A stretch of DNA of 32,000 nt, from positions 300,001 through 332,000 of the forward strand of contig NW_008806285.1 of NCBI RefSeq assembly GCF_000400465.1, written 5' to 3'. Positions 657-31,545 of this stretch are shown here, piece by piece. A program made the position numbers and the translations under genes. This DNA is from Wallemia ichthyophaga EXF-994. Its lineage: Eukaryota > Fungi > Basidiomycota. Below the pieces are notes generated by a model. The model did no database searches. It saw nothing but the letters and a program-made list of their open reading frames with translations, and was not told where the DNA came from. The number at the start of each line of letters is the position of its first letter. Position 1 is the first letter of the stretch.

Positions 657-2597
657 TTAAGCCTTCTTGGCTGCGTCTTCGTGCTGATCTGAAGCTTGAG
701 AGAACCTCTCACCATCCTCAAATCTCTTGTCGACGTTCTCGCCATTCTCATCATGATATGTATCAAGCTTGGCCGACTCCATGACATCCCTCCTATTTTC
801 ATAGCCAGGAGGTGTCCAAGCTCTGCTCTTCCATGGCTTCAAGCCATCGGTTGAGTACATTTCGTCTACTGCCTCAAGAGATAAACCGGCAGTCTCGTAG
901 AGGAAGAAGTATACGAAGACTGACGCAAATAAGTTACAGCCAGCGAAGACGTAACCATAGGCGAAGCCAATGTCACCAGTGATGAATGGTGAGAAGAACC
1001 CGATGAGGAAGTTCCATACCCAGTTTGATGCGGTGGCAATGGATGCTTGTCTGGCTCTGGTTCTCATTGGGAACGTTTCACCAGTGATAATCCAGCAGGC
1101 TGGACCCCAAGTAGTTGCGTAACTGGCAATGAACAAGCAAGCTGAGACAATCATGAGATTACCCATGCCCTCGTTCTGATCTGGTGGGCGAGCAACACCG
1201 ACGGAGGCAAAAATGAAGAGCCAAATCTAAAGAGAGATTAGCAATGGCTAATGGTATCTATAAACTACTCACGGCTGTAGAAAAGTCAGTAATATTCAGG
1301 GAGGAAGATTTTCATGACTTACATTGCCAAAGACCACCCCAGAAGAGAGGACGACGACGTCCAAAGTTCTCTAAGACGTAAAGTGATGCGAATGTGCAAA
1401 CGAAGTTGACGGCACCGAGAATGATTTGTGTGATGAACGAATCTGAGAGACCGACCGATTGGAAGATAGTGGCACCGTAGTAGAAGAAGTAGTTGGCACC
1501 AGTCAGCTGTTGCAGACTTTGCATCATCATACCAAGAAGCGTTCTGTAGACCAACTTCTTCGAGCCATGGTGACCAATGAAACACTCCACCCAGGACTGC
1601 CAGAATGGAGACTCAACTTGTCTTTCAATTTCAATACGGCCAGAAATCTCTAGGAAGTCGTGCTCGACAACGGTTCTTTCAAAGTCTGTCTCAGCACCTC
1701 TAATTCTCTCGAGCGCATGTCTTGCCTGTTCAGGCTTGTTGTTCTTCATCAACCAACGGGGAGATTCTAGCGCATCGTTAGTAAGGAAGGGTTGAAAACA
1801 TAAGTATTCACCTGGTAAGAGCCAGATACCACAACCGAGAGTGCAAGTTAACACGAAACCGAGACCGATAATGATTCTCCAACTCGCGGCGCTCTCTAAT
1901 TGACGAGTACCAATGCAGAAGCAGTATGACAGTAGAATACCGAAGGTGATTGCCAGTTGGTAACAAGCGACAGCCGTACCTGTTAAATGTGGTAAGATGA
2001 AGGCTTCCGTAGCTAGATGATAGTATTACCTCTGAAAGAGGCCACTACACACTCGGACATGTACATTGGTACAGCGGCGGACAACGCACCGACACCCAAA
2101 CCGGCAATAAGTCTACCGACAGCGACTTGCTGCCAGACAGTGAAGGCAGCCATTTGAACGATAAATCCAATGCTGACGACGATACACTCGATAGTCATAG
2201 CCCATCTTCTGCCGAGGTAGTCGGCAATAGGAGCACCAAAAAGAGCACCAGCAAGGGTACCGATGGAGAGCAAACTGACGATAAGACCCTTTCTGACTCT
2301 TGAAAAGTCCATATCACAGTTCAATCCGTTAGGATCACAGTTTGTACGAATGTCTGAGAACCGTTCGAGGAAGTCATCCATCAGGACGATGTCTGAGATC
2401 TGACCGGTATCGTAACTGTGGCAGTGTCAGCGGCTATGCACAAGTACAATAACTGTACGCACCCGAAGATCATCCCTCCGACGGAGCTGTGGGATTCGTC
2501 AGTTGGAGTGCGGAGACGGATGCGGGGCCTACGTTAAAATGGCAATGAAAATAGACACAATGCCCAGCGGTTGATTATTATACTTGATGTTGGTCAT
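657..2597 (-). CDS. Hexose transporter (MFS sugar porter family), paralog A; 7 exons
   Basis: Spliced model starts MTNIKYNNQPLGIVSIFIAILTSVGGMIFGYDTGQI. Introns at 2487-2532, 2416-2462, 1980-2029, 1767-1811, 1275-1322 and 1227-1272. Sugar-porter motifs DYLGRR, PESPRWL, QQLTGANYFFYYG, FGRRRPL, TWGPACWIITGETFP. Stop TAA at 657-659. Confidence 0.93.
1273..1274 (-). other. 2-nt micro-exon (CC) of hexose transporter A
   Basis: Minus strand reads CAA T|gtaagt..actgac..ctacag|CC|gtgagt..gctaat..tttag|ATT TGG. Including it gives WQSIWL, aligning to WQCVWL in paralog B. No other stop-free GT-AG solution was found. Confidence 0.75.
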
Positions 2598-3701: not shown

Positions 3702-5512
3702 TTAGACCTTACGAGAAACATCTTGATGGCCTGATGTTTGAGAGACTCTCTCCTCATCATCATCGAATCTCTTTTCGCCATTGTCGGCATGATCCTTGTG
3801 GTACTGCTCAACCTTGCTTGTTTCCATGACTTCTCCTCTTGAACTGTAACCAGGGGGTGTCCATCCACCGCTTTGGTAAGCCTTCAAACCGTCGGTAGAG
3901 TACATCTCGTCGACTGCCTCAAGGGTCAAGCCGGCAGTCTCGTAGAGGAAGAAGAAGACGAAGAATGCTGCGAATAAGTTGCAACCAGCAAACACGTAAC
4001 CGTAACCGTATCCAATATCACCAGTGATGAATGGCGAAAAGAAGGAGATAAGGAAGTTCCACGTCCAATTTGAAGCAGTCGCGATGGCTGCTTGTCTGGC
4101 TCTGGTTCTCATTGGGAACGTTTCACCAGTAACAATCCAGCAGGCTGGACCCCAAGTAGTGGCGTAACTGGCAATGAACAAGCAAGCTGAAACGATCATG
4201 AGATCACCCATGCCCTCGTTCTGATCTGGTGGGCGAGCAACACCGACGGAAGCAAAAATGAGCAACCAAACACATTGCCAGAGACCACCAATGATGAGAG
4301 GCTTACGACGTCCAAAGTTTTCCAAGACGTAAAGTGATGCAAATGTGCAAACGAAGTTGACGACACCGAGGATGATTTGGGTGATGTAAGAATCTTCGAT
4401 ACCAACCGATTGGAAGATCGTGGCACCGTAGTAGAAGAAGTAGTTGGCACCAGTCAGCTGTTGCAGACTTTGAATAAACATACCAAGGAAAGTTCTGTAA
4501 ACCAACTTCTTAGTACCAGGATGGCCGGCGAAGCACTCCACCCATGATCTCCAGAATGGAGATTCGGTTTGTTGCTCCATCTTAATACGGCTGGCAATTT
4601 CAAGGAAATCATGATCGACGACTGTACTATCGAAGTCCGTGTTGACACCTCTGATTCTTTCAAGTGCACGTTTTGCTTCGTCAGGTTTGTTGGCTTTCAT
4701 GAGCCAGCGTGGTGATTCTGACATGATATCAGTATGAGTTAAGAAAGCCATTTAAGTATGCTCACCTGGAAGTAACCAGATACCACAACCAAGGATGAAG
4801 GTCAAAACCATACCAAGACCGACAATGATTCTCCAGCTGGCATCGCTATACAATTCACGGGTACCGTAGCAGAAACAGTATGCCAACAAGATACCAAAGG
4901 TGATGGCAAGTTGGTAGCAGGCGACAGCTGTACCTCTGAAGGCAGCAACGACGCACTCTGACATGTACATTGGTACCGCGGCAGAGAGGGCACCGACACC
5001 AAGACCAGCAATAAGTCTACCAACAGCGATTTGCTGCCAGACATGGAAGGCAGTGATTTGAACAATAAATCCGATAGTAGTGACGATGCACTCAATCGAC
5101 ATAGCCCATCTTCTACCCAGCTTGTCGGCAATTGGAGCACCTAAGAGAGCACCGCACAGGGTACCAATTGAGAGAAGACCGACAATAAGACCTTCTCTGA
5201 CTCTGGAGAATTCGTAGGTGGTGCAGTTCATTCCGTTGGCGTTGCAACCTTCGCGAATATCTGCGAAACGCTGGAGGAAGTCTTCCATGAGGAGCATGTC
5301 CGAGATTTGACCGGTATCATAACTAGAAGAGTCAGTGGCGACATCCTGGTCGTACAAGACCCTGTACACACCCAAAGATCATACCTCCGACGGAGCTGTA
5401 AGATTTGGTTAGCTGCGATATGCGGGGAGTGTGCGGGGGCCTACGTTAATAAAGCGATGAAGATTGTGACAATCCCCAGTGGCTGTCCATTTGCTTTAAA
5501 ATTTATAGCCAT
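3702..5512 (-). CDS. Hexose transporter (MFS sugar porter family), paralog B; 4 exons
   Basis: Starts MAINFKANGQPLGIVTIFIALLTSVGGMIFGYDTGQI. Introns at 5396-5444, 5323-5371 and 4718-4765. Same sugar-porter motifs as paralog A, with co-linear homology along its length. Confidence 0.95.
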
Positions 5513-6676: not shown

Positions 6677-8099
6677 ATGAACATCCAAAGATTGCCTCCT
6701 GAGCTGATACCCAATATCATCGAGCCACTTTCGGCCAACCCGAGGGACCTGCTGCCGGTGCTCACACTCAATAAGGAGTTCTCCCATGAAGCGTATAAGC
6801 AGCTGTATTCATTCGTCGCCCTCAGGCCATGGGAGCGACCCGACAAGCTGGTGGAGTTCTTCGACGCCATAAAGCACAACAGCGAGCTAGCGCACCTTGT
6901 GAAAAAGCTAGAGATACGATCCTTTCCCCGTCAGCTCAGCCACATCGAAAGAGTCCATCTCTACGACACATTGACGTCGTCACTCACCCATTTCACCAAT
7001 CTAGAGATCCTCAGCTGGACGCGAGCCATGACGCTCAGCACGGATATCCTATCAGTCGTTAGCACCTTACCTCGACTGTCAGAGCTGGAAATCAATTCCG
7101 GAAACGATATAAGATACGATGACATCTTCAAACCCACTCCAGCCCGATGGCGCACACTGCACACCCTGAAAGTTATCCTGCCTGATCGTAGCATAGCGCG
7201 CGCTTTGCGGCCATTTCTCCAGCAGCGTGGCCAGCAGCTGCGATCGCTGATGATATTGGCCAAAGAGAGCGGCGTGATTGACGATAAATACCTCAACAGC
7301 ATTGCGGGAAGCTTGACAAACCTCCATCAGCTCAGTCTTGGTGGATTGAAGCGCGTGACGGATAGATCTATCGTGAATATCCTCGTGCGGAACCCACACA
7401 TTACCTCACTGGCATTAGAATCGCTCAGCTTGACTAGCACTCACTGGGAAATTATTATGCCTTACCTCACACATCTCAGTGTGACATATAACTCTTCAGG
7501 CGTGCTGGATAAACTATTAGACGCTATTAGACCGAGCAAGTCGTTCAAGAGCTTCACTATATACTCGTCAGGGATGGACAGTCTGCCGTATCTGCCCGCG
7601 GAGTTTCTCGAGCGTTTGGTCAATATGCATTGCTATACATTGACGACACTTAGGGTAAGCGTATCTCTGCTTTGCCCGGATAGGACTAACAACATTTACA
7701 AACAGATACATCACGTCTTGGTTACTCAGGAGATGCTCACTAACGTATCCAACAAGTGCCCTCATCTCACCGAATTGGTGGTGCATCTCCCCATTGTAGA
7801 CACCGGCATTCTGATGAGCGAGTGTGCACCGAACTGGACCAGGCTTGAAAAGCTACATCTGCTGGGTGACTCCAGCACTGGTAAGGAGATACAGATGGAG
7901 CACCTCCTACCCTTCGTGGAGATATGCCAAAACCTCACACAAGTGGGATGGCGATCGCGGGTTTGGAAAGTTCACAGACATGGCCAGGATGTACGTCTAG
8001 ATCTGTACAAGCAGATTTATATTCCTAGCGTGTTTTCGGTGTGTACTGAGTACCCTACTAGACTTGTGACTCACGACACTCAAGGTTATTCGAACATGA
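6677..8099 (+). CDS. F-box / leucine-rich-repeat (RNI-like) protein
   Basis: N-terminal F-box-like LPPELIPNIIEPL..DLLPVLTLNKEF..EAYKQLY, then LxxLxL repeats (LTNLHQLSLGG, ITSLALES, LTELVV, LEKLHL). Introns at 7655-7705 (in-frame) and 8039-8084 give the C-terminus IPSVFSVIRT*. Confidence 0.75.
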
Positions 8100-8410
8100 G
8101 CTTGAGGAGGAGGATGAAGCCTTCGGTGCATGGAAGGATGAACACTGAGATAGCAATTTTGAACACAAGTTTTGCATATGCCCCTCACTGTACTATAAAG
8201 AATCATATATATATTCTAGGACATAGAATCGAAGATAAAGTTAATCATAATAATATACTTGTAATGTTCTCATTTTGAATGTCACTTGCTGAAAGACAAA
8301 GAAAACTTTCAATACACCAACCATAGATGGAGACCAGCTCTGCAAGGAATAAGGAGACCAGCTCCAATTAGCTTCTTTATGGCGCACACGACTTTTAAAC
8401 CCAATCACAA

Positions 8411-11295: not shown

Positions 11296-14200
11296 CTAAC
11301 AAACATCAATAATACATGGCTTTGACTTGTAATCTTGTATTCTCTCCACTGATCTTCTAACGCGCTCGTCCCAGTCGATTGTCGCATCAACTATGTCATC
11401 AGCATACACTTCCTCTAATATCACCACAACTTCAACGCGACATTTTGACAATGGCAGTATTCTAACATGCTGCACAGTCTCCTCATCCGATTCAAGACGT
11501 TGGAGATGCGTCCATTCCGGTCCCTTAATAATCACGCATCCTTCCACACTCGCTTGGACTTTGTATTTCAACTTCATAAAGCGCTCACTTTTGTTCGCTA
11601 TGCGCAGCCTCAGTTGAGCTTCCTTTCCAATCACTATCTTGTCCCATGAACTCTGTGCCAAATCTATGTCTATATCATTTAGTTTAACCATCTCCAACAT
11701 CCTCCTGCTCAGCTTATGTTTGCGGAGGTTGAAGTTGAGGTTTCCAGCTCTTGGTGTGTCCGTCGTTGAGTCGGGTTCACGCCAAAATAGTCTCACATTC
11801 TTGTATAGCTCTTGACTATACCAGAATATCTCTCTCATGATCCTCTCCTTCTTCAGTGGTAGACTTGTTTGTGATACTGTAAACTGTCTCTCACAGAGAC
11901 TTGGTATGTTAGCCGTCGAAGTCGCTTCTCGTAGCTTCATTCTCCGCACAGGCAAAACAAGCCTTGCAGTTGAACCAGGCTGAACCAATCGACAGACTCC
12001 AAATTCGGTCATGTATTCCTCTTCTTCGTCTTCTTTGACTCTCTCCAATACCACTTCAAATGGAGTACCGAATGAATTTCGAATATCGACGATAAGCAGA
12101 AACTCCTTGGTATCTTTGTTGCTATTCTGGAGCAGCTGTGATTGCTCTATCAGGGGCAGATGTGGTGTACTAGGCTGCGTCATTTGTGTCGGAGTCATTG
12201 GTTGGCTGGCGCTAGCGCTGGGTGAATTAGGCCACAATCCGAAATAATCCTTCTGCTCCAACTCGGAGGCCTTCTCGACGCCTTCGAAAGGCAAAACAGA
12301 GATTTGTTGAGCTTCGAGCGTCTGTTGCACTGTTAATGACAGCGAGTAAACAAGCTGACGCGCGTAAATCTGTTCAGAGTCCTCGCTGTCACGACCATAC
12401 TCAACGATGATTGAACCCTGGTTACAACCCACTCTTCCATAGCAATATATATCTAAAACTGCTCTCCGTCTTGCTGGTATAGTTATTGCCGAGATATCGG
12501 TACAAGGTCTGAAGACAGGCTCGTGCGCGACCGTGTATTCCATCTCGTGCGTTTCAGTCAAACTACCCTGCTGCTCTTCTATAGCTGATAACAAACATTC
12601 CGTTGAGTTATCGCTGAATTTTATGTCGATGAAATCTACATCAACGTCCGACGTATTCTCTAGAATCAACTTGAGCGTCGTACTAATCGCGTTGTCAGAT
12701 AAAGCACTGAAGTCTATCAGACCCACCATTCTCCACTGTAAAGCATTAAAGCATGATGATTCATATTAGTCGCCGCAACGACGAGCGTTGGTAGTGAGTG
12801 AATTGCAGTAATATTGATATACTGGGGACTTTTCATACCTCCAGGAGCGCTCGTGAGAGTAGTCCTCCGGGAATCGTTCATAGAAGCAATGGTTGAGGAT
12901 CTACTAGACATACTCTGCCTTTGTAGAGATGGTGTACTGTTCAATGCCGAGCTCTTCATCTTGCTCCTCCGCTCTAATTTCAAACTCCGAGCTTTGCTCT
13001 TACGTTTCTCTTCGTCCGTGTTAGACAACGGGAGAATAATTTCCTTCGTCACCGTCCCTTTCATTCTCATTCTACATCCCAGTACTGTCAGTTGGCCCGT
13101 ACTCTGTACTAAACCTTTCAGTAGCAATGTCTGATATGAAACTGGTGCCAGACAGACGTCCATCTTCTCGCCCTCAAAGCATACACCCGAAGTGCTCAGG
13201 ACGTGTCAGTACCACCCAATATATTCGAAATATGACTTACATTAGCTCAACACCTTGTAGCTCTAGTGGGAATTTATAAGGATTATGCAGCGTTGCTGCT
13301 ATTTCTAACATCTCATTTTGTACAGTCATAGCCTGGATATAAATGTCAACTTACTCACGCAATCTTAACAAACTAACCTCTGCTATTCTCAAAGATCTTC
13401 TAGCTGGTGTGTTTGCAAGCTTTCGAATTGATGATCGCTGCGAGCTGTATGCAAATGGTATGGCATTTCCTGGTAGTCTTGGGGATGTTAAATGGAAGCG
13501 CGCTATTCTACGATAAACCCACGTTATAAGCTCCAGGCTGAGGAGTGGGTCAGGAACCCAAAAAGCGAGTTCAACAGTAGTGGTTAAACTCCGACGCAGC
13601 ACATCCAGTGCTGCAAGCATAATCTGAACAATTCTAACCTGCTCAGGAGCAGCTAGTGCAAAATAGAAATACCTCAACAATATAGCAGAATACTTGATTA
13701 TGGCATTAAAGTCGCCAATATGCTCTACGATAGATATGGCATCTCTGAGAAAGTTTCGCTGCATAGTAGTCCAATTAAAGCTATGCTCGAGCTCCTCTTT
13801 GAAACTATCCCTCGCTTCATTATCTTCGTCTCTATAAAGGTATCTAAACTGCGTGTCTATCCCGTAAACATCACAAACATCATCCAGAATCTTGACCAAC
13901 GATTCACTGTTGTCTTTCAATTGCCTCAGTACAACCTTTGGGTAAGATTCTTCGGTCTTAAGATCGTTCCGTGATGCTTCAAGTAAATCTGTACAGATAG
14001 CTACAACTTCCTGACGGAAATAGGCTGCCTTGCGCGCATAGCCGATGCTATCATGCGTATATAACAGCGCTATTGTAACCTTTAGCTGCTCCAATCTGTC
14101 TAATTGAAGTAGATGTGCTCCATGAGCCATTTCTGCAATCAATGAGATCTGAGATCTGGGCAAATGAGGCATCTTGTCGGCATGTTCCACTATCATATCA

Positions 14201-15292
14201 CGATCTGGCTGAGTTTCCAGAAAGACGGGCGAGCCTCCAATCACTAATGCATTTAAAGACTCATCATTCAGACCCCCACAAGCCCAAACTGTCAAGAGGA
14301 ATTTCGAAAACCTCAGGCACGCGCGGACGTAAGTCCTCACAGCTGTCAAGTTTGTATTGGAAACTGATAGATTGTTGATATTTAGACTTGAGTTTGAGGC
14401 GGGTGCACTACTAGATGAGGTCTGTAGCAGACGTTTATATGACGCTAAAGCGCTACTGAATTTGTCGTATATTGCAGCCCAAGGAGTTTCGAGTAATGCG
14501 TGGATGGGTATTTTTTCTGTTTTCTGCCAATATAGTAAAACCTGTGCAACCGCTTGGCATTCAATGGCGGATGCATGATGGAATGAGTCGACAGGTGCAC
14601 GTAGCTGCGACAAACTCTCGTTATAGTTTGCCAAACTCTCTTTTAGCCTGCCTGACATGAGAAAAAGATCGCCATAGAGCTTAGACTGTCTACCGTCGTT
14701 TTTGCGCCTCTCGCCTGCTGTTTCTGCAAACCAAGACAAAATGCTGCCGATGATATCAGCAATCAGGGTATTCAAGTAGAATGCGCTGTCTTCAACCAGC
14801 GCTAAATGAGAAGAAGGATTGTTAGCGGCTCTTTCACTGTCTCTAGGCTGGAATGCCCAGCAGCGCTGTATGGGTGGTTTGAGCGATGCAGGGAGCCCCA
14901 CGATGGTGTGATTGAACGCGTCGTTGGCTGTATCTAGAGAAGAATGCGAGGGACAGTCGACTACGCCAACCACAGCATGAAATTGGTCGCTGAACGCAAC
15001 CTGTGCGTCGTTGATGATGCTGTTAGGATTCGAGTGATAGTTGATGTGTATTGTGTGACTCGTCGGAGACAGCGGAGGAGGGTGAAATGCAGCTGTACAA
15101 ATAGCGTCAGGTGTACGTCTCTGTTGATCTCGAAGTCAACCCACAGAATCCTGGCACTTCAGATCCTTTCATCTGCTGGAAGCTGCTCAAAGCTTCTAAA
15201 GAGCTCTTGTAGACTGATTTACGTATGGGCTTGATTGGCACGACTAATATATTCAAGCATCCCGGCTGGATGAATCTCTCGCCATCTTTCAT
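11296..15292 (-). CDS. TRS120: TRAPPII complex subunit Trs120 / TRAPPC9
   Basis: N-terminus FIQPGCLNILVVPIKPI, AVVGVVDC, GRQSKLYGDLFLMSG, GYARKAAYF, VQNEMLEIAATLHNPYKFPL and DIRNSFGTPFEV match the family layout. ORFs 15107-15322, 13351-14973, 12717-13163 and 11296-12729 join through short introns. Start at 15292 is inferred. Confidence 0.85.
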
Positions 15293-16234: not shown

Positions 16235-17302
16235 TCATTTCCCGGCTTTGGCTCTGCGTTCGGCAAACCTCCTCTTGGCAGCGTCGATGGCAGACTCATC
16301 GTTACGTCTTTCGAGTGTCTTGGCTTGTTGGGTTTGTGTTGCAGATTTCTGCTGCTCTTCCTTCTCTTTCGTTAGGGACAACATCTGCTCCTCAACCATT
16401 TTACTGTGACGTTCTCTAATTGCAGCTTGTGAGGCGTCAGTACCCACTGCCTGTCTTTTGAATCCTGCTTCTTTGTTGTTTGAAGTTGGAAGAGATGGTC
16501 CTTGAGGAGCTCGCCTCTTCTTTCCTGCATTCAGACCCGCAGATAAAAGCTGGACTTTATCAACAGCCTGTCCTTCATCATCAATCTCAACATTGTTGCC
16601 TTTAGATTGAGCCTTCTTAAGCATTGAGTCTGAATCAATTTCAGTCTGCGAAGCAGGCGGCCGTATAACGTTTGATTTGTTTTCCTGTGCAGCTTTCATA
16701 GCAGCAGCATGCTCTTCCTCCTTATCGTCGAGTATACCGCGCATAAATGCTGATGCACCAGTTCCTCTGCCGTCTCTCTCCTTCTTTTCCCTGGCTTCTT
16801 CCTCTTCCTCCGCCAGTCTAATTTCCTCAAGAGTCTTCTTGTAGCCTTCGGTGACAAACTCTTCGGTGCCTTGATACTCATCACCTTCTCTTTCTCTAGT
16901 CTTTTGTATCATCTTCTCTTCAGCTCTACTTCTGTCGAGTTTGCGCTTTTCTGCAGCAACAGCCAATCCTTCAATGTATTTGGGTGCGCGTGTGCTGCTT
17001 TCTTTTTTCCGACTAGCCTCGACGGCCTCTCTGGCAGACTGCATCTGATCAAACACTTCGTCATACTCAAAAACACTATCGTCGAGCTTTTTGGCATCTT
17101 CCAGCTGCTTTGCTATCCTCGAGCTGGTTGCTTGGGCAGCTTGGGCTACCATTCCAGTACCCTTACCACCACTGCTGCTGCTGCTGCTCTTGGCGGGTGG
17201 CTTGAACCCGGAATCATCGTCGCTGTCATCGCTATCTTCCAGTATAGATTTTTTAGGCTTTTCCTTTGGCTGGTTGAGCCCACCACCTAGCTTGATATTC
17301 AT
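16235..17302 (-). CDS. Nuclear speckle splicing regulatory protein 1 / CCDC55 (DUF2040) family
   Basis: Intronless 355-aa ORF with DDSVFEYDEVFDQM, PKYIEGL...AEKRK..R..EEKMIQKTREREGDEY...EEFVTEGYKK and a C-terminal AKRRFAERR. Confidence 0.85.
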   Translation of the reverse strand: MNIKLGGGLNQPKEKPKKSILEDSDDSDDDSGFKPPAKSSSSSSGGKGTGMVAQAAQATSSRIAKQLEDAKKLDDSVFEYDEVFDQMQSAREAVEASRKKESSTRAPKYIEGLAVAAEKRKLDRSRAEEKMIQKTREREGDEYQGTEEFVTEGYKKTLEEIRLAEEEEEAREKKERDGRGTGASAFMRGILDDKEEEHAAAMKAAQENKSNVIRPPASQTEIDSDSMLKKAQSKGNNVEIDDEGQAVDKVQLLSAGLNAGKKRRAPQGPSLPTSNNKEAGFKRQAVGTDASQAAIRERHSKMVEEQMLSLTKEKEEQQKSATQTQQAKTLERRNDESAIDAAKRRFAERRAKAGK

Positions 17303-19569: not shown

Positions 19570-21197
19570 ATGCAGGTCGTAGATGCGAAGCAGACGGCTT
19601 TAAGCAACACAAACGCCCTCGAGTACACGAGCAAAGAGAAAGCCTTGGAAAGTCTGCTCAGTGCCCCAGTCATCTTCCAAGAAGCCAGCAATCCAGCGAG
19701 TAAGGGATTGGGTATACCGAATGGCTATAAAGCAGTCAACGAGGAACTTAAGGTAAAACTTCATAACTCTTTTGCGATTTACTCACACATCTCATCTCAT
19801 AGGCTACACCAAAAGAAGAACAGCCGTACTCTCCATCCAAAGCCAGTCCTGCCGCATCTGAATCTGCATCTGCATCCAATTCCGCCACGACGAGTGCTGC
19901 TGCATCTCCGGCTACTAAGCCTTCTGCCAAAGATCTCTACCCATGGCCAATCGCACCAGCTTTTCCCAAAGGCATCAACAATGTCGGCAAAGGGTTGAGG
20001 AACGTTGGAAACACGTGTTTCTTGAACAGCACGATGCAGTGCTTACTACACACACCCTCCCTGATGAACTTCCTCCAATCACAGCATGCCAAAGGTAGAC
20101 CCGACAAGAAGTTCTGTATGATCGAAGCACTCAAAGCCTGTGCAAAGAGCTCTTTCTCGGGCTCAGGTGGAAGTTATGCTCCAGCACCTGTGGTGAGAAA
20201 TCTCAAGGCCATCGCCAAACATATGACAGTCGGTCGACAGGAAGATGCCCAGGAGTTTCTTCGTTATGCCGCAGATGCACTGCAAGCTTCTTATCTCTCA
20301 AATTTCCCTAAATCAGCCAAAGGAAAGCAAGCCGAGACTAACCCAATACATAAAATCTTCGGCGGGAAACTTAGATCGAGAGTTCTGTGTCAGAATTCGA
20401 AACACGCTTCGGATACATTTGACACCTTTATGGATTTGAGTGTCAATGTTAAAGGTTGCAGCAACATACAAGAATCTTTCAAATCTTTCACTGCCCTTGA
20501 CAGACTCGAAGGTGCTAACAAATACAAATGCGAAAGTTGCAAGAAGCCAGTACCGGCTACAAAGCAATTCACGGTACATGAAGCACCGCAGTGTCTGACG
20601 GTGCACCTGAAGAGATTCTCACCATTGGGTCAGAAGCTAAACGGTAGTCTTGCTTTCGATGAGAACCTCGACATACAGAAATACATGAGCAAAGGGCAAC
20701 CATCACCCAAGTACAAGCTCTACGGTGTCGTGTCCCATTATGGAGGTAGTGCGAGGTCCGGACACTACATCGCGCACGTCAGGGCACCTAATGGAAGATG
20801 GTACGAGATGAATGACGATATGGTATCGCCCTCGAAACCCCCATTCGGATCTAAGAATGCCTACGTGCTCTTTTACGAGAAAGAAAGAAGTAGCACATTG
20901 AAAGATGCTGTCCAAAGCGCAACATCAGCCACTCCATCAAGTGAAAAGATATTAGGCAAGCGTAAGGTGAATGAAGATGGCTCAGAATCACCTCAGAAGA
21001 CACCGCTGAAGACGCCAGTACGCAACAAAATGCAAACCAAGGCACAAACGCCGGTAAGTGCGCCAGCACACAAACCCAGATTAGTATCATTCGATATGCC
21101 CTCATCAAACAAAGCAAAGAAGAGGAGAATGTCTATGCCATTTAACAAACGGGATACACCCTCAGATGATCTTGGATCTCCTGTTGTACGCCGTTGA
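19570..21197 (+). CDS. Ubiquitin carboxyl-terminal hydrolase (peptidase C19, USP36/USP42-like)
   Basis: Cys box GLRNVGNTCFLNSTMQCL, GRQEDAQEFL, LTVHLKRF, His box YGVVSHYGGSARSGHY..H..WYEMNDD, AYVLFY. Intron 19753-19802 joins the N-terminal exon. Confidence 0.9.
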
Positions 21198-21238
21198 TTG
21201 TATTTTTTTATTTGATAGATTATGGGTATTCAACTTGT

Positions 21239-22705
21239 TTAAACTACATGCTTTTCTATTCTAGATGTGTGGCTCGAAGTTGAGGGTGAGTGCTGATCGT
21301 TGTCGAACAAGACGTCCTCCTCCGCAGGGTGTTCTTGAGGACTATCAGAGGTAGATATCCGTGCAGCTTGGTTCGGTTGCTTGTTTGGTGTTTGTGATCG
21401 CGAGTGAACAGCAGAGCTAGCGTGAGATATTGAGCTTGATCTGGATTCAGACTGGGGGAGAAGGTTGTTCAGATGAGCATGGCCATGTCCGTCGGTTGGG
21501 CTGCCGAGTTGAGATGGAAGATCATCCAATGCATACTCGGAATCAGCCGCTGCAGACCAGATACGTCTGTGTCCATTAACAGCACTCCTAGCGCCTGAAA
21601 ATGGAAGTATCTTTTCCTTACCGATGTCTGCATTGGTAGGCAGACCGCCCGGATCTCTAAGATGCTCAGGAAGCAAGACGTAGAAGCAAGCAGTTGCTAA
21701 ACAGGCACCTGCAACTGCATCGACCAAGTAGTGATGACTGAGGTACATTGTCGCCCAGTACAGCCAACCTACATACGCCCAGTAGAATGCCTTGAATCTA
21801 GGGAAGAAGTGCGACAAGAAAAGCGCCTCTATAGTCGCTGAACCAGCATGCAGAGATGGGAATGCACCAAATACAAGTGGCGATGCACCAAATGCGGAAG
21901 AATATGAATGCGAGTGCATCAGTTCATCGATTCTAGCCAATCCAGCTGGGCTACCAGGAATGGAATAATCAGCTGGAAGCAATCCGTAAAGGAGTTCATA
22001 CCCTGAGTATTTCATCAGCAACGGTGCATCGTATCTCAAACTATACCCACAAGGAGGTGCGCAAGGGAAACTGACCTGCACAATAACACCAATGATGTTC
22101 ATTACACCAAATACGAAGCCCCAGAACTGCAAGGCGGAGTATGGCTTATGTCCATTTCTGTCAGCGCCGCCTTTGGCAGGTGCGTAGACCCACGCAACGG
22201 CGGCAATAACGAAGGGAACGACGTAGTGAACCAGTCCGTAAGGAAACCACGCGCATATATCCAGTATCCAATGTCTGTGCGTTGTAACCAGATTGCTGAT
22301 GTTGGCGCCATACCACACTGATTCTAACGTCGGCAGAATAGTAACATTGATTGTAGGTCTTACGGGCGTTGGTATGAAGCGTGCACAGAAAAACGTCATT
22401 AACCAACACAATATTGGCGTACCAGGAAGAAAGAACTGAGAAGTCACCGGAGTGATGATCAACCCGAAGTAAACGACAGGTATCAGCCATTTCACGAGAG
22501 GGATAGGAATTGACATCATTATAAAGCTCGGGAGCGCAATAAGGAAGTAAATTAACCACTGTATATCAAATTTACGCCATTTGTGTGTTTTGAGCTTCTC
22601 TACCGTTACTTTGGGTGACAAACCATAATCAAGTGATAAAAAGGCTGACTTTATGTCGCGTATTAAATTAGAGACGGGCTTTGGTGCTCTCAGCCCGATA
22701 CGCAT
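21239..22705 (-). CDS. AUR1: Inositol phosphorylceramide synthase Aur1
   Basis: ILPTLES, PFPYG-like WFPYGLVHY, APPW|YE restored by removing the in-frame intron 22003-22050, FGAFPSLH and LSHHYLVD catalytic motifs. Confidence 0.93.
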   Translation of the reverse strand: MRIGLRAPKPVSNLIRDIKSAFLSLDYGLSPKVTVEKLKTHKWRKFDIQWLIYFLIALPSFIMMSIPIPLVKWLIPVVYFGLIITPVTSQFFLPGTPILCWLMTFFCARFIPTPVRPTINVTILPTLESVWYGANISNLVTTHRHWILDICAWFPYGLVHYVVPFVIAAVAWVYAPAKGGADRNGHKPYSALQFWGFVFGVMNIIGVIVQVSFPCAPPCGYSLRYDAPLLMKYSGYELLYGLLPADYSIPGSPAGLARIDELMHSHSYSSAFGASPLVFGAFPSLHAGSATIEALFLSHFFPRFKAFYWAYVGWLYWATMYLSHHYLVDAVAGACLATACFYVLLPEHLRDPGGLPTNADIGKEKILPFSGARSAVNGHRRIWSAAADSEYALDDLPSQLGSPTDGHGHAHLNNLLPQSESRSSSISHASSAVHSRSQTPNKQPNQAARISTSDSPQEHPAEEDVLFDNDQHSPSTSSHTSRIEKHVV

Positions 22706-22741
22706 CGTCCTCGTTGTGGTGGTCGAGTCGTAAGAGTGGAT

Positions 22742-23693
22742 TCATTTTCTTTGAAATGCTATCGTACAAATTGTGCTGCCTTTACTTCCGCCAAAGGAGA
22801 ATGAAGGATGTTCTACGCTGGAATGATACGTAAACCCTGGGAGAGTGTATCGTCAGCTTTGTGCACGGGCTCGGGAAGTCTACTCACTGTCTTGGTTGAG
22901 GAAAGTTGATTTTATCTCTTCCTCCGTGAAGTTACACGATGTAATCAGAAGCTTACCGCCTTTTCGCACCAAGTCCGCGGCGTGCTTGGCATATAAAAGG
23001 CGGTTTGAGCCAGTCGATAGACAGATAGCGTCTGCATGATTAGATATGCGACTTTTGAACTTGGAATACCTACCAAATGTCCCTTTGTCCATCACGATGT
23101 CCCATTCACCTAGCCGATTGATCTGCTGTTGATCGAGTACATCTAACACGTCAAACGAGACTGCTTCACAGTCCTTGCCTCTGCTCTTGGCTATGTTGTA
23201 AGAAAGCTTAATAGAAGCAGGACTGTAGTCAACGCCCTTCAAATACTGGCCATCATAGCCGTTGCTAACCAATTCGAACAATAGATGACCGTTGCCGGTT
23301 CCCATACTACGAGCAGGGTTATTTCGTGATGCAGGAGATACCAAAAAGCTTACTCTAGCACACTCGGGCCACTCTCTTCAGGCGTTGCATTATCTAAAGC
23401 CCAATCAACCATCTTCTCGACGCTATCTTCACCGAACCTGGAGACTTGTGAGATGTCTTTCACTAGACATATCACTATTCTAACCATATTTCTCCCTCTT
23501 CACCTATCTCTTCAAAATTATTGACTTCCCGTCTGAAAGCCCGGTGAGCTCATACGACTGACGCACGCAGACGCAACCTACTCATATACATCATCCCAGC
23601 TATGCAAATTGAGTTTTAAGCGCTGATCAAATATCCCACTCACTGCTCCTTCGTTCCTAGCCTGGACGAAGGTAGATCTTCCACCTGGGCCAT
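22742..23693 (-). CDS. EFM4: Protein-lysine N-methyltransferase Efm4/See1 (eEF1A-KMT2/METTL10 family)
   Basis: Spliced MAQVEDLPSSRLGTKEHWDDVYEREVNNFEEIGEEGEIWFGEDSV..VLDMGTGNGHLL..GVDYS..DKGTFDAICL..LLITSCNFT..HPSFSFGGSKGSTICTIAFQRK*. Six introns. Confidence 0.92.
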
Positions 23694-23761
23694 GATCGTT
23701 TATTATCAAAGGCTTGTACAGAGTAAGAGCAACTATACATTGGTTTATACATAAAAGCACA

Positions 23762-26099
23762 TCAATCGATTTTATTTTTGGTTGCACGAAGTAGTGCGAC
23801 ATCCTGGAGTAGTGTTAGAGCAACAGTACGTAACCTACAAACTCACGTAATTCTGGTCCATCTTGTAGTTGGTATACATCTGTACTATTGTGAATTTCGA
23901 AGATAAGCATGAAATCTTCACTCACCCAAGGCACATCATTCTCACCATATTTTTCAACTGGCCTTTTATACGTGAGATACTCATCAGCCAATGCGTTACA
24001 GACCTTGTCGTCTCCGTACAATGGTAGGAACACGCCAAGCTCCCAATTAGTTATACTGAGACTGCCTGTCTTGGTGAATCTTCCCCATGCAGATGGTGTA
24101 AAGTTATGCGAGCCAACATAAACCCATCCGCCAGCCACATCCTTTTCAGTGACGCGTTCTGTTGTGTCAACTTCGGATTCCGTAGCGCTCGAATCAGTGT
24201 CTTCATCGGATGTGAATGTCACTTTTTCCTTGCCGTCCTTTGCCTTCTTCAATTTCCCAGCCATCTTGTTTTTAGTAACGGAATGTGTACGCTTTAGAAT
24301 ACCACAAATTGTCTTAGCATGCATGAAGATATTTCCACGCTTGCTCGGGTTTCTGTGCATTACGTCGCGTGGAAAGTCTGCATTAAGCCACTTTTTGGCA
24401 CTAATTGTGTCGTTAGCTTTGGTCGGTGTAATATCACCTCTTACTCCATGAACATGTTGCCTCCCATATCTGGTCCTCCCAAGTTCTCCTGGGCCATCTT
24501 TTTGGTAGGGAAAAGAATCTTGATAGGAGGCCATTTCTTGCTGTCCTCTTTCTTTTTGCTTTTAAGTGCAAGTGCATCGTCTTGTAATCCTGGTATGAGA
24601 TTAAAACGACCCGAGGCTGAGTTGTAGAACTGTCTGATATTAGATTGCGCGACTGCTTACAGCATAACCTACCTCCCTTCCCCAATGAGCTTTGTATGCA
24701 CCAAGCGAGCTACCTTGGCACTCTAAGTCAACGAACCATTCATGCTTTGCAGAGTCACCGCGCGCATCAATGAGGTCACCGTTAGCATCAACACCACATC
24801 CAGCCCCTCTAATCAGATCCGCGAGACGCGCATGTCCGACGCGCTTGATGTTGTCTACGCCTTTGTGCTCCCCGTTTATGCTAGCAACAAGGCGTGCTTT
24901 GGATCTTGAGAAGTCCCACTGACTTATCGCATTAACATTGGGCAATGGAATGTCATCCATTTCAGCAGCCACGCCCGACAGAGTGCTTTGTAGCTGTGAG
25001 TATTGACTTAGAAGCAGAATGCTCCTGCTCACTCATTCAATTTCAGCTTGTAGAGGAACCAACTCCAATCTGTTTCGAATGCCGATGCTTGCTTGCTGCT
25101 TGATCCATCTAAAGTATTTCCTTTTGGTGGAAAGTCTTGTATAAATAAAGTCTACTACGCGTTAATGAGGGCCATTTGGATTTGTTCAATACCCTACATT
25201 TTCATTTAACTTCCAGTCCATTTCAATGAAGTTTGCAGTTGTCACCAAGACTCTCATCCATCCATCAGTTGTAAATATCTAAATTTAGTGAGATTCGTGT
25301 AACACTCTTGCTATGACATAACTTACGATAGCGAACTACTTTAACTTAGAGAGGGTTTAAAGTCAAGTTAGGAAGTCTTACCTTCGCATGGTAAGTACCG
25401 CGTGCATCTACGTTGTGCATATACCAATTCCTTCAGATGTCGTCAGATCGAGATAACGGATACCGATCACTTACCTGTTGTTGACAGTTGAAGCGAGTTT
25501 GCTCTGCCTTAACATTAGTTCTAGAAATTATTTTCATAGTAAGGCGTACTGGTTGCGCGCAAATGACTTTTGCGTCGCCAAATAGCGGTATCATTAGCTC
25601 ATCTTGGCGGACATAGCTGGACATGATGACCAATTTGAGTCTATTGGGCTAGAATTAAGATGCGTCAATAGATACCACAGCACGAATCGCAGCGTACCTG
25701 TCCGAAACACTTGTTGATTGACCAAGAATTCTCATTTCTTTCGGTCAGGTAGTTGACAGTTTGCTTTACAACACCGTCGGGATACTTGTCTGCACCGCCA
25801 GTATTAGCTTGGGGCTGTTGCTGAGTAGAATGGTCGCGCTTGACGTGCTTGGCTTGTCGTTCCAGACGTTCAGCCTCAAGCTTCTTCCTCTCCTTTAAGA
25901 AATCGAATGGAGCGTTCTTGGAAGTTAACGTCGATTCTTTTGCCGAATTTGTCGCGTCATCTCCATTAACCATCTCTGGAACCGCAGATGGCTTTATTTG
26001 CTTCGGCGGGATGATTTCATCTGACTCATCTTGTGTACTGCCACGGTTTTCGTCTTCGCTATCTGAAATATTGATAACTTGTGCGCTTCTCTTGGACAT
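23762..26099 (-). CDS. TDP1: Tyrosyl-DNA phosphodiesterase 1 (phospholipase D superfamily)
   Basis: Two HxK catalytic motifs (GTYHAK..RVLVTTANF..DW and FMHAKT..WVYVGSHNFTPSAWG..ITNWELGV), plus LECQGSSLG. Multi-exon; the last exons give VPW|MYTNYKMDQNY|DVALLRATKNKID*. Confidence 0.9.
25327..25335 (-). other. 9-nt micro-exon (F-A-I) of TDP1
   Basis: aagtag|TTC GCT ATC|gtaagt links GTYHAK to IFTTDGWMRV in frame. Confidence 0.75.
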
Positions 26100-28913: not shown

Positions 28914-31545
28914 ATGGCCACACCAAGTTTGATTCCATTGGTGGATACAACACCGAGCAAAGATTTGTTGTTAAGCGCCGCAAGAATTACTCCTGTCCTA
29001 GTTCCATCTAGCAATCTCAGCAACACCGTCTCTACCATCCCAAAGTCATCCAGCTACTACGTCTTAGTAGCAGACGATGAGAGCTTAGACAGCGCCATTA
29101 GTTACCTCAATAACGGCGCATCAGCTATCTTCGCTTCTGTCGAATTGGCTGACAGATGTATCTCTGCTGGCGTCCCTTCAGAAAAGCTCTATGCGGTCTC
29201 TAGCAGCACTGATATTCCAGAGGATGTCCTCAAAGGCATCAAAGGTGCCCTTATCAAGATTTCTGGCGTAAATTCAGCCACCCAACTTCCGAAACCAAAG
29301 GTTACTCTCTACTTAGACGAATCTAAGATTATCCCAACCGAGAAGACAGTTGCTTCCTTACACAAGAGCAATGCTGCGCTTGCGGTGCCACTATCTCAAC
29401 TCACCAACGACGCCACATCCTCATCCAAGTTGAACATCACAAACGCATTCTTGGCACCAATCACGACCGATAGACCAGATGGTTTGTTCAGCACCATCGT
29501 GTCATCCTACCTTCACGGTGGAAAGTCATTAGGATTGTGCTATTCATCAAAGGAGTCAATAGAAGAATCCGTCAGAACAGGCAGAGGTGTCTACCAATCT
29601 CGCAAACATGGATTATGGCGCAAAGGAGAAACAAGTGGTGCTATCCAAGACGTCGTTAAGATCGACCTAGATTGCGACTCTGACTGTCTCAACTTTGAGG
29701 TCATTCAACATGGCGCTGGGTTCTGTCATTTGGACACGCCAACTTGCTTCGGTCAATTGAGCGGCTTAGCTGCTTTGGAAGAGACTCTTGTTTCACGCCA
29801 CCGATCAGCACCCGAGGGTAGTTACACTAAGAGACTGTTCAACGATGAAACTCTTCTCAGATCAAAGATTATGGAGGAAGCTGATGAGCTATGTGCTGCA
29901 AAATCCCAAGAGGATGTTGCATTCGAGGCAGCCGATTTGATTTACTTTGCATTAACAAGATGTGTCAGCAAGGGTGTCAATCTCGCAGATATCGGTCATG
30001 CATTAGACAAAAAAGCTGCTAAAGTATCGAGACGACCAGGAAATGCTAAGCCTAAATATCTTGAGCAGGCTCAAGCTAAGATTACCCCAGCTCCTGCACC
30101 ATCGACCACCCAACAACCTCAACCAACATCATTTGGTAACGATTTGATTAGAATGCGCAAGACTAAGCTGGACGGAATTGCCGAAGAGGAGCGCCTGCAG
30201 TTGTTGCGTAGACCTGTATTGAACTCAGGCGCAATGATTGATCGTGTCAGACCAATCGTTGAAGGTGTTAGTACTAAAGGTGACAAGAGCTTGCTTGATT
30301 TCATTGCCAAGTTAGACAAGGCAGACCTGAAGTCGCCTATTGCACGTGCGCCATTTGAGGAGCCAACAATCCAACAAGATGTCAAGGAAGCAATTGATAT
30401 CGCTTATGAAAACGTACGTAAATTCCATGTTGGTCAAGCAGAGAAGGAGCCTTTAGTCGTTGAAACCATGCCGGGTATCGTTTGTCAAAGGTTCGCTAGA
30501 CCAATCAGCAGGGTTGGTCTGTATGTGCCAGGAGGTACAGCAATCTTGCCCTCCTCTGCTCTCATGTTGGGTGTACCAGCGCAAGTAGCAGGATGCAAGG
30601 AAATAGTATTGGCAACTCCGCCAAAACCTGATGGCAGCATTGCACCAGAAGTACTCTACGTCGCAAAGAAGGTCGGCGCGTCTGCCATTCTCAAAGCAGG
30701 AGGTGCACAAGCCGTAGCAGCTCTCGCTTATGGTACAGAGACAGTGCCAAAGGTTGACAAGATTTTTGGTCCTGGTAATCAATGGGTTACCGCCGCTAAG
30801 ATGTTCGTATCGACGGATGCTGACGCTCAAGTCGCTATTGATATGCCTGCTGGTCCATCGGAAGTACTGGTTATTGCTGACAAGACAGCCAATGCTTCCT
30901 ACGTTGCCAGTGACCTTCTTTCACAAGCTGAGCACGGTGTCGACAGTCAAGTTGTGCTGGTGACGATCGATCTCAGTGAGAAGGAGATAGATGACATTGA
31001 GAAAGAGGTTGAACAGCAAGCTAGAAAGCTGCCACGTGTCGATATCACCAGAATTTCGGTATCAAAGAGTTTAATCGTATCAACTAGTGACGTCAAATCC
31101 GCATTCGATTTCTCGAATGATTACGCTCCTGAGCACCTCATTCTTCATATTGACAGTGCGTCTGAGAAGGTGCCGATGGTCGAAAATGCTGGTAGTGTGT
31201 TCGTTGGACAATACTCTCCAGAGAGGTAAGTGTTCCGGCTATACCTGAAGCCAGCTGACTTCGCTTATAGTTGCGGTGATTATGCATCTGGCACCAACCA
31301 CACACTTCCAACAAACGGGTTTGCTAGACAGTATAGTGGTGAATACAGTCAAATCTCTTATGAATCAGTCTAACACGAAAATAGGTGTAAACACTCTTTC
31401 ATTCCAAAAGCACATTACTTCACAAGAACTTACTAAGGAGGGATTAGATAAATTGGGGCCAGTTGTCGTAAAATTAGCTGAATGTGAAGGATTACGCGCG
31501 CACGCCAATGCCGTACGAGTAAGACTCGGTATGCAATCACCATAA
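28914..31545 (+). CDS. HIS4: Trifunctional histidine biosynthesis protein (PR-AMP cyclohydrolase / PR-ATP pyrophosphatase / histidinol dehydrogenase)
   Basis: [28 protein letters not shown] (HisI); [25 protein letters not shown] (HisE); [42 protein letters not shown]|[15 protein letters not shown] (HisD). Two 3' introns. Confidence 0.96.

Follow-up and report, generated by a model that had tools for sequence, protein, structure and literature searches.

A putative two-nucleotide exon shared by sugar-porter genes of the halophilic fungus Wallemia ichthyophaga

Can two nucleotides enclosed between two introns form an exon of their own? This question is raised by a stretch of 32,000 nucleotides (nt) from Wallemia ichthyophaga EXF-994 (contig NW_008806285.1, positions 300,001 to 332,000 of the forward strand), which we call the window and to whose first letter all coordinates refer. 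W. ichthyophaga is a halophilic basidiomycete of the class Wallemiomycetes and the most halophilic fungus known. On its minus strand (657..2597), the window carries a sugar-porter gene of the major facilitator superfamily (MFS), termed here gene A, in which two short introns stand side by side with only the dinucleotide CC between them. A sequence-only reading of the window had proposed that this CC is an exon. Our analysis leads us to the same view: CC (1274-1273, minus strand) is very probably a constitutive 2-nt internal exon of this sugar-porter gene and would be retained in the mature mRNA. We favor this reading because of the reading frame and the residue spacing that it gives, the Pfam score of the resulting protein, an architecture found at five loci, the purifying selection acting on the gene and three precise losses of both introns in relatives.

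The interrupted codon of gene A

The splice model of gene A comprises seven exons on the minus strand (2597-2533, 2486-2463, 2415-2030, 1979-1812, 1766-1323, 1274-1273 and 1226-657, the last one including the stop codon) and yields a single open coding sequence (CDS) of 1659 nt, that is, a protein of 552 residues. This protein is a member of the sugar porter family (MFS, Pfam PF00083), as it matches the Sugar_tr profile over its full length (positions 2-452 of 452) with 422 bits, above the curated cut-off of 22.3. Its closest database relatives are W. ichthyophaga proteins, and the nearest named ones are annotated as fungal hexose or glucose transporters. The four introns other than introns 5 and 6 measure 45-50 nt. 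Exon 2 (2463-2486) counts merely 24 nt (CTCCGTCGGAGGGATGATCTTCGG), codes for part of the segment SVGGMIFG and is flanked by introns of 46 and 47 nt.

Read on the minus strand, with slashes at the exon-intron boundaries, the site is CTC TTC TGG GGT GGT CTT TGG CAA T/GTAAGT...ACTGAC...CTACAG/CC/GTGAGT...GCTAAT...CTTTAG/ATT TGG CTC TTC. Exon 5 (1323..1766) ends with TGG CAA T and gives the first base of codon 363. It is followed by intron 5 (1275..1322; 48 nt, phase 1), with the donor GTAAGT, the branch motif ACTGAC (1290-1285, branch adenosine at 1286) and a CAG acceptor. The dinucleotide CC (1273..1274) then provides bases 2 and 3 of codon 363 (T+CC = TCC, Ser). Intron 6 (1227..1272; 46 nt, phase 0) displays in turn the donor GTGAGT, the branch motif GCTAAT (1242-1237, branch adenosine at 1238) and a TAG acceptor, and exon 7 (657..1226), which starts with ATT TGG, contains 189 codons and the stop. 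If the usual topology of the family applies, as we assume, codon 363 belongs to the transmembrane helix next after the conserved GRR loop, and exon 7 presumably encodes the rest of this helix through to the last helix and the C-terminal tail.

CC is thus flanked by two complete and independent sets of splice signals, each with a donor, a CTRAY branch motif and a YAG acceptor, and each branch adenosine (1286 and 1238) stands 11 nt upstream of its own acceptor. Both introns have a normal size for gene A, and a single intron of 96 nt would be about twice that size. The sequence-only reading had placed introns of 48 and 46 nt around CC, between 1227 and 1322; these limits are exact, and we found all the donors, branch sites and YAG acceptors that it had named. 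We then looked in the window, on both strands, for the composite pattern made of a donor, a branch motif, a YAG, an exon of at most 12 nt, and again a donor, a branch motif and a YAG. It occurs once, against 0.005 occurrences expected in Markov-1 random sequence.

The two bases are needed for the reading frame of gene A and for the spacing seen in its homologues. With CC included, the protein reads GRRRPLFWGGLWQ-S-IWLFIFASVG at the site, and only the junction T+CC+ATT gives an uninterrupted 552-residue protein with the homologue spacing. Indeed, in all five homologues that carry no intron at this site, exactly one residue separates WQ from the hydrophobic run: WQ-C-VWL in paralog B, the tandem neighbor of gene A, WQ-G-VFL in paralog F, WQ-G-AWL in the Wallemia mellicola ortholog of paralog E, WQ-A-LWL in Coprinopsis cinerea and WQ-S-AWL in Heterobasidion irregulare. 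The alignment of WQ-S-IWL with WQ-C-VWL that had been proposed earlier therefore holds, paralog B reading TGG CAA TGT GTT TGG.

Other ways of splicing this region were also considered. When the outer donor is joined directly to the outer acceptor, CC being skipped, the frame shifts as had been foreseen; a stop is met 22 codons further on, and the rest of the site helix is lost together with all later helices. We also enumerated all single GT-AG or GC-AG introns around the site in gene A. Each one that leaves the frame free of stops deletes at least 15 conserved residues, in agreement with the earlier remark that alternative AG acceptors shift the frame or run into TAG. The Pfam score points in the same direction: the protein containing the micro-exon scores 422 bits against Sugar_tr, while two public models of gene A reach 376 and 345 bits (differences of 46 and 77 bits).

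Related genes, selection and origin of the double intron

The tandem paralog B (3702-5509, minus strand) is 76% identical to gene A. It has no intron at the site, where it carries an uninterrupted Cys codon (4274-4272), and it has kept equivalents of introns 1, 2 and 4 and lacks introns 3, 5 and 6. The genes follow one another as B - A - C on the chromosome of other strains, and paralog D comes next after C in EXF-994, the reference strain; all four genes encode sugar porters. The public protein models of three further W. ichthyophaga paralogs (C, D and E) are odd at the very same position, and we examined the corresponding DNA. A gap of 96-98 nt interrupts the same codon in each of them.

The sequence-only reading had advised looking for the same double intron in relatives, and it is indeed present there. 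Whereas gene A reads CAA T/GTAAGT..CAG/CC/GTGAGT..TAG/ATT (codon TCC, Ser), paralog C (locus L005) reads CAA A/GTGAGT..CAG/GT/GTGAGT..CAG/ATT (AGT, Ser), paralog D (L001) CAA A/GTGAGT..TAG/CA/GTGAGT..AAG/ATT (ACA, Thr) and paralog E (L002) CAG T/GTGAGT..CAG/TT/GTAAGT..TAG/GTT (TTT, Phe). A fifth case, CAG T/GTTAGT..CAG/GT/GTAAGT..CAG/ATC (TGT, Cys), was found on a contig assembled from run SRR25399871 (L006). This gene is syntenic with E, and its protein is 83% identical to that of E, with a synonymous divergence (dS) of 1.26; it would therefore be the E ortholog of a different Wallemia taxon. The double intron thus occupies the same codon at five loci, with diverged intron interiors and with the dinucleotides CC, GT, CA, TT and GT.

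In an alignment of the five loci, 20 of the 28 splice-signal columns are invariant, against 7 of the 69 other intron columns (Fisher p = 5e-9). Both internal splice sites, acceptor and donor, and the upstream branch motif are among the invariant columns, three elements for whose conservation a single-intron model gives no reason. No conserved intronic element beyond the core splice signals stands out in this alignment. As far as these five sequences can tell, the double-intron architecture is conserved while the sequence of the introns diverges.

Single introns were enumerated at all five loci as well. Some of them are free of stops, namely those chosen by the public models, and they delete or insert residues in a conserved helix. 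At locus C, the sole single-intron solution that leaves the length unchanged replaces conserved sequence by residues encoded in the intron. Correcting the models raises the Sugar_tr score of D from 377 to 388 bits and that of E from 392 to 396 bits.

We examined 17 distinct public protein models (one of them partial) for A, C, D and E, taken from the EXF-994 reference and from the strains of a population-genomics set of 21. None is correct at the site, which bears out the earlier claim that annotation misses such exons. For gene A, the EXF-994 model P0001 is identical to the micro-exon model apart from 27 residues that are missing at the site, and P0002 and its relatives contain a frame-shifted false exon ending in GVVFGN. 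Translated intron sequence adds 9 or 14 residues in other models (E, P0007; C, P0174; D, P0004), 8-11 residues are deleted in others (E, P0184; C, P0005 and P0182), and the C model P0180 is truncated. These errors sit in one transmembrane helix, and any analysis of transporter repertoire, selection or structure in this model halophile inherits them. The main value of the present work is practical and lies in correcting the annotation of genes A, C, D and E.

Errors of the public models extend beyond the micro-exon. The population-strain models P0002, P0121, P0123 and P0124 of gene A also read into intron 3 (1980-2029, minus strand), with FRATEAFILPHLTGTAV in place of FRGTAV, and P0122 and P0124 read through intron 4. 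The neighborhood of exon 2 is misread in some public models of paralogs B and C, P0003 inserting GVLYDQDVATDSSS and P0005 having a false N-terminal stretch.

The sequence-only reading had left room for gene A being a pseudogene; the pattern of substitutions speaks against it. For the frame that depends on the two added bases, the ratio of nonsynonymous to synonymous substitution rates (dN/dS) on the exon 7 side is 0.09-0.15 at a dS of 0.6-1.6, for the pairs A/B, A/C, A/D, C/D and E/E ortholog. Judged by these values, the exon downstream of the micro-exon is under strong purifying selection. Among four closely related further strains, the CDS of gene A presents 14 single-nucleotide polymorphism (SNP) sites, 7 of them downstream of the micro-exon, and all 14 are synonymous. 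The 96-nt double-intron stretch shows no difference in four strains whose assemblies are independent. In a divergent lineage (L017 and L018), 66 of 1941 positions differ and the open reading frame (ORF) of gene A is intact: of the 50 changes in the CDS, 39 are synonymous and 11 replace an amino acid, apparently by a similar one (I/V, S/T or D/E, for example). Two substitutions fall in the double intron of this lineage: the first donor reads GTGAGT instead of GTAAGT, and a second change lies inside intron 5. CC is the same.

When did the double intron arise? A bootstrapped neighbor-joining tree was built from 299 ungapped columns, starting at ESPRW and covering the rest of the conserved core. 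It supports a Wallemia clade (100%), the groups A+B+C+D (98%), C+D (100%) and E with its ortholog (100%), as well as an E group including W. mellicola (91%). The double intron is found on both sides of the deepest split within Wallemia: A, C and D carry it on one branch, E and the E ortholog on the other. The simplest reading is therefore a single origin before the expansion of the family, so that the double intron would predate the duplications behind the Wallemia paralogs A, C, D and E. No intron is present at the site in the Agaricomycete homologues that we checked (Coprinopsis cinerea and Heterobasidion). Both introns are absent, with exactly one codon kept, from B and F of W. ichthyophaga and from the syntenic W. 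mellicola ortholog of E, which in the simplest reading would reflect three later joint losses. Joint losses that leave precisely one codon are the outcome that one would expect of cDNA-mediated loss from a correctly spliced mRNA.

Splicing, competing explanations and other genes of the window

How could such an exon be spliced? We propose that two ordinary short U2-type GT-AG introns (48 and 46 nt) would each be recognized across their own length, that is, by intron definition, which is established for fungi with short introns. As the upstream acceptor and the downstream donor are 2 nt apart, the two introns would most likely be removed consecutively, with the same product in either order. The U1 site of intron 6 (-3 to +6) overlaps the AG of intron 5, from which we infer this consecutive removal; ordered splicing by intron definition is in our opinion a reasonable deduction from the 2-nt spacing. 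Since the context of each site is nearly equal before and after the removal of the other intron, the sequence would impose no particular order. The mature mRNA would then read TGG CAA TCC ATT TGG, codon 363 (Ser) being built from T and CC and followed by ATT. The exon appears to have been kept for a long time without constraint on its own sequence (CC, GT, CA or TT), and its recognition would therefore rest entirely on the flanking introns. The double intron would have been kept under selection in five lineages and precisely lost in three others.

Several points weigh against the inclusion of CC. The presence of CC in the mRNA is deduced from genomic comparisons. The exact 552-residue product is absent from a collection of 15 billion proteins; in the same collection, a 133-residue query spanning the junction matched no Wallemia fragment derived from a transcript, and the clusters of the paralogs hold genome-derived models only. 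A search of the Joint Genome Institute (JGI) metagenome contigs for the 21-nt spliced junction returned two exact matches, both of them due to chance and located in unrelated sequence. Chance matches to a 21-mer are possible in a collection of that size. Gene A is also missing from the published table of differentially expressed genes; of the paralogs studied here, that table names C and a fragment of F only (supplement of PMC3849046). As to the comparison between genes, A, C and D are rather closely related, so that the five loci amount to about three or four independent lineages, and the A+B node of the tree obtained a bootstrap value of 40% and is not resolved. Finally, arithmetic alone would be satisfied equally well by any two retained nucleotides, and it is the logic of the splice signals alone that singles out CC.

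This last point opens the way to a different reading, in which a single non-canonical intron of about 94 nt, beginning with AA, GA or TA and ending with AG, would leave the first GT in the exon, and gene A would encode WQ-C-IWL through the codon TGT. Retaining the first GT in place of the internal dinucleotide does keep the frame and yield a sense codon at each of the five loci; in gene A this codon specifies Cys, as in paralog B. However, such an intron would have to be of the AA-AG, GA-AG or TA-AG type, which is not a known splice class, and a perfect GT[AGT]AGT stands at the canonical donor of all five loci. It would also give no reason for the upstream branch motif, for the invariant internal YAG-NN-GTRAGT or for the doubled size of the intron, and we regard this reading as highly improbable. 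The two readings predict the same codon at C and at the E ortholog, and different codons at A (TCC with the micro-exon, TGT with the first GT), D (ACA or AGT) and E (TTT or TGT). For gene A, the predicted junction is GGCAATCCATTTGG (longer form GGTCTTTGGCAATCCATTTGGCTCTTC) if CC is included, GGCAATATTTGG (longer form GGTCTTTGGCAATATTTGGCTCTTC) if it is skipped and GGCAATGTATTTGG if the first GT is retained instead. The predicted inclusion junctions of the paralogs are TTATGGCAAAGTATTTGGTTGC for C, GGCAAACAATTTGG (longer form TTATGGCAAACAATTTGGCTGC) for D and GGCAGTTTGTTTGG (longer form ATTTGGCAGTTTGTTTGGTTAA) for E. One could also imagine that the 96 nt form one intron and that gene A is a frameshifted pseudogene, or that the assembly is in error. 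The outer sites, donor and acceptor alike, are good ones, and single-intron solutions were favored by gene predictors. On the other hand, purifying selection operates in the very frame that needs two extra bases, the CDS SNPs between strains are all synonymous, the stretch is identical in four strains, the divergent lineage keeps the signals and CC, and four other loci are organized alike. On these sequence comparisons, we consider a pseudogene or an assembly error as effectively refuted.

A further proposal would add to the constitutive micro-exon rather than replace it. The exon would be real, and its skipping would be regulated, for instance by salinity or sugar supply, as a switch of expression. 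Skipping would join two good sites and bring a stop after 22 codons, and a regulated micro-exon is known in Trichoderma Xlr2 (PMC11121469). In the published data on W. ichthyophaga grown at 10% and 30% NaCl, paralog C (GME3193_g, EOR00421), which lies directly downstream of gene A and outside the window, rises from 9.2 reads per kilobase per million (RPKM) at 10% NaCl to 52.7 at 30% NaCl (log2 ratio 2.5), and the paralog F fragment is up-regulated too (supplement of PMC3849046). Paralog C, which bears the same double intron, is thus expressed and salt-induced, and its salt regulation at the transcript level would fit a switch. Set against this, the sequence of the micro-exon is not conserved, no intronic element is conserved beyond the core splice signals, and three relatives manage without both introns.

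TopHat is unable to place a 2-nt exon. This program was used in the above RNA-seq study, which recorded one exon-skipping event genome-wide (PMC3849046). The figure is a point against regulated skipping, to be read with the blindness of TopHat to such an exon in mind. The sequence-only reading had seen in the skipping of CC a possible regulatory off-switch; our analysis lends no support to this idea, the frameshift being a consequence of skipping and not evidence of regulation. We thus consider regulated skipping of the micro-exon to be unlikely. A bolder version, to which we give slightly less credit, is that the 2-nt exon would act as a splicing checkpoint of the tandem sugar-transporter family, with salinity or the carbon source shifting the balance between inclusion and skipping followed by transcript decay. 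If true, it would account for the persistence of so fragile an arrangement in five lineages, from a time before W. ichthyophaga and W. mellicola diverged.

The remaining part of the window contains ordinary housekeeping genes. On the minus strand, two long ORFs within 11296-14973 match TRAPPC9/Trs120 (profile positions 840-1189 and 253-633) and presumably are one gene split by an intron, and an ORF at 16235-17302 contains an NSRP1_N domain (nuclear speckle splicing regulatory protein 1), from which no link to the micro-exon is implied. A trifunctional histidine-biosynthesis gene with PRA-CH, PRA-PH and histidinol dehydrogenase domains lies on the plus strand (28914-31229). ORFs within 19995-24534 match a ubiquitin C-terminal hydrolase, a PAP2-family phosphatase and a Tdp1-like fragment, and one at 9870-10700 matches PPP4R2. 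A 533-residue ORF on the plus strand (6677-8278) gave no Pfam match at E <= 1e-5.

Comparison with known very small exons

Does the Wallemia exon resemble arrangements described elsewhere? Two of them share part of its layout. In the stwintrons of filamentous fungi, known from the work of Flipphi and Fekete, an internal intron reportedly splits the donor, the acceptor or the branch motif of the external one, and no exon sequence stays between the two. As in stwintrons, two short introns are here in immediate contact and would be removed consecutively. We nevertheless rejected this assignment, as the signals of both introns of gene A are whole before splicing and the mRNA needs the two bases between them. 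At the ratchet points of recursive splicing in Drosophila, AG and GT abut, zero bases are retained and the removal is stepwise. The juxtaposition of an acceptor and a donor and the stepwise removal of a long stretch are shared with the Wallemia site. A recursive splice site was rejected as well, two bases standing between AG and GT at all five loci and their removal shifting the frame.

A closer parallel can be drawn with exons of a single nucleotide, which have been confirmed by RNA reads in Arabidopsis APC11 (PMC4674806) and in Fusarium CYP621A (PMC12940212). Like in Wallemia, a tiny exon lies between canonical introns, is needed for the frame and the spacing of a motif, and was missed by annotation pipelines; an intron-less relative serves as support and the combined "intron" has about twice the usual length. 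Indeed, the Fusarium exon was argued for from an intron-less relative and a double-length intron before reads confirmed it (PMC12940212). The two cases differ in that the CYP621A exon is a conserved G within AGGGT, whereas the Wallemia exon has 2 nt that vary freely (CC, GT, CA or TT) and encodes part of a variable residue.

The nearest comparison is offered by the long-read annotation of Coprinopsis cinerea, which lists 57 exons of 2 nt in 50 genes, together with 13 exons of 1 nt and 27 of 3 nt; omission of these ultra-short exons leads to premature stops, and automatic annotators overlook them (bioRxiv 10.1101/2024.05.10.593147). The sequence-only reading had placed the exon near the physical minimum. 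This is roughly right, with the reservation that exons of 1 nt are known (PMC4674806, PMC12940212) and that exons of 2 nt are not rare in basidiomycetes, so that the Wallemia exon leaves the known limits of splicing unchanged. The C. cinerea exons of 1-3 nt belong to the same phylum and likewise lie among short introns. They were seen in full-length transcript reads, while the Wallemia exon is argued from comparison and selection, and the latter differs further by its occurrence in the Wallemiomycetes, in the sugar-porter family and in several paralogs at once. Exons this small are already documented, and a further one will not surprise a specialist; what deserves attention is a micro-exon that is a shared feature of a family of paralogs and whose own sequence varies freely.

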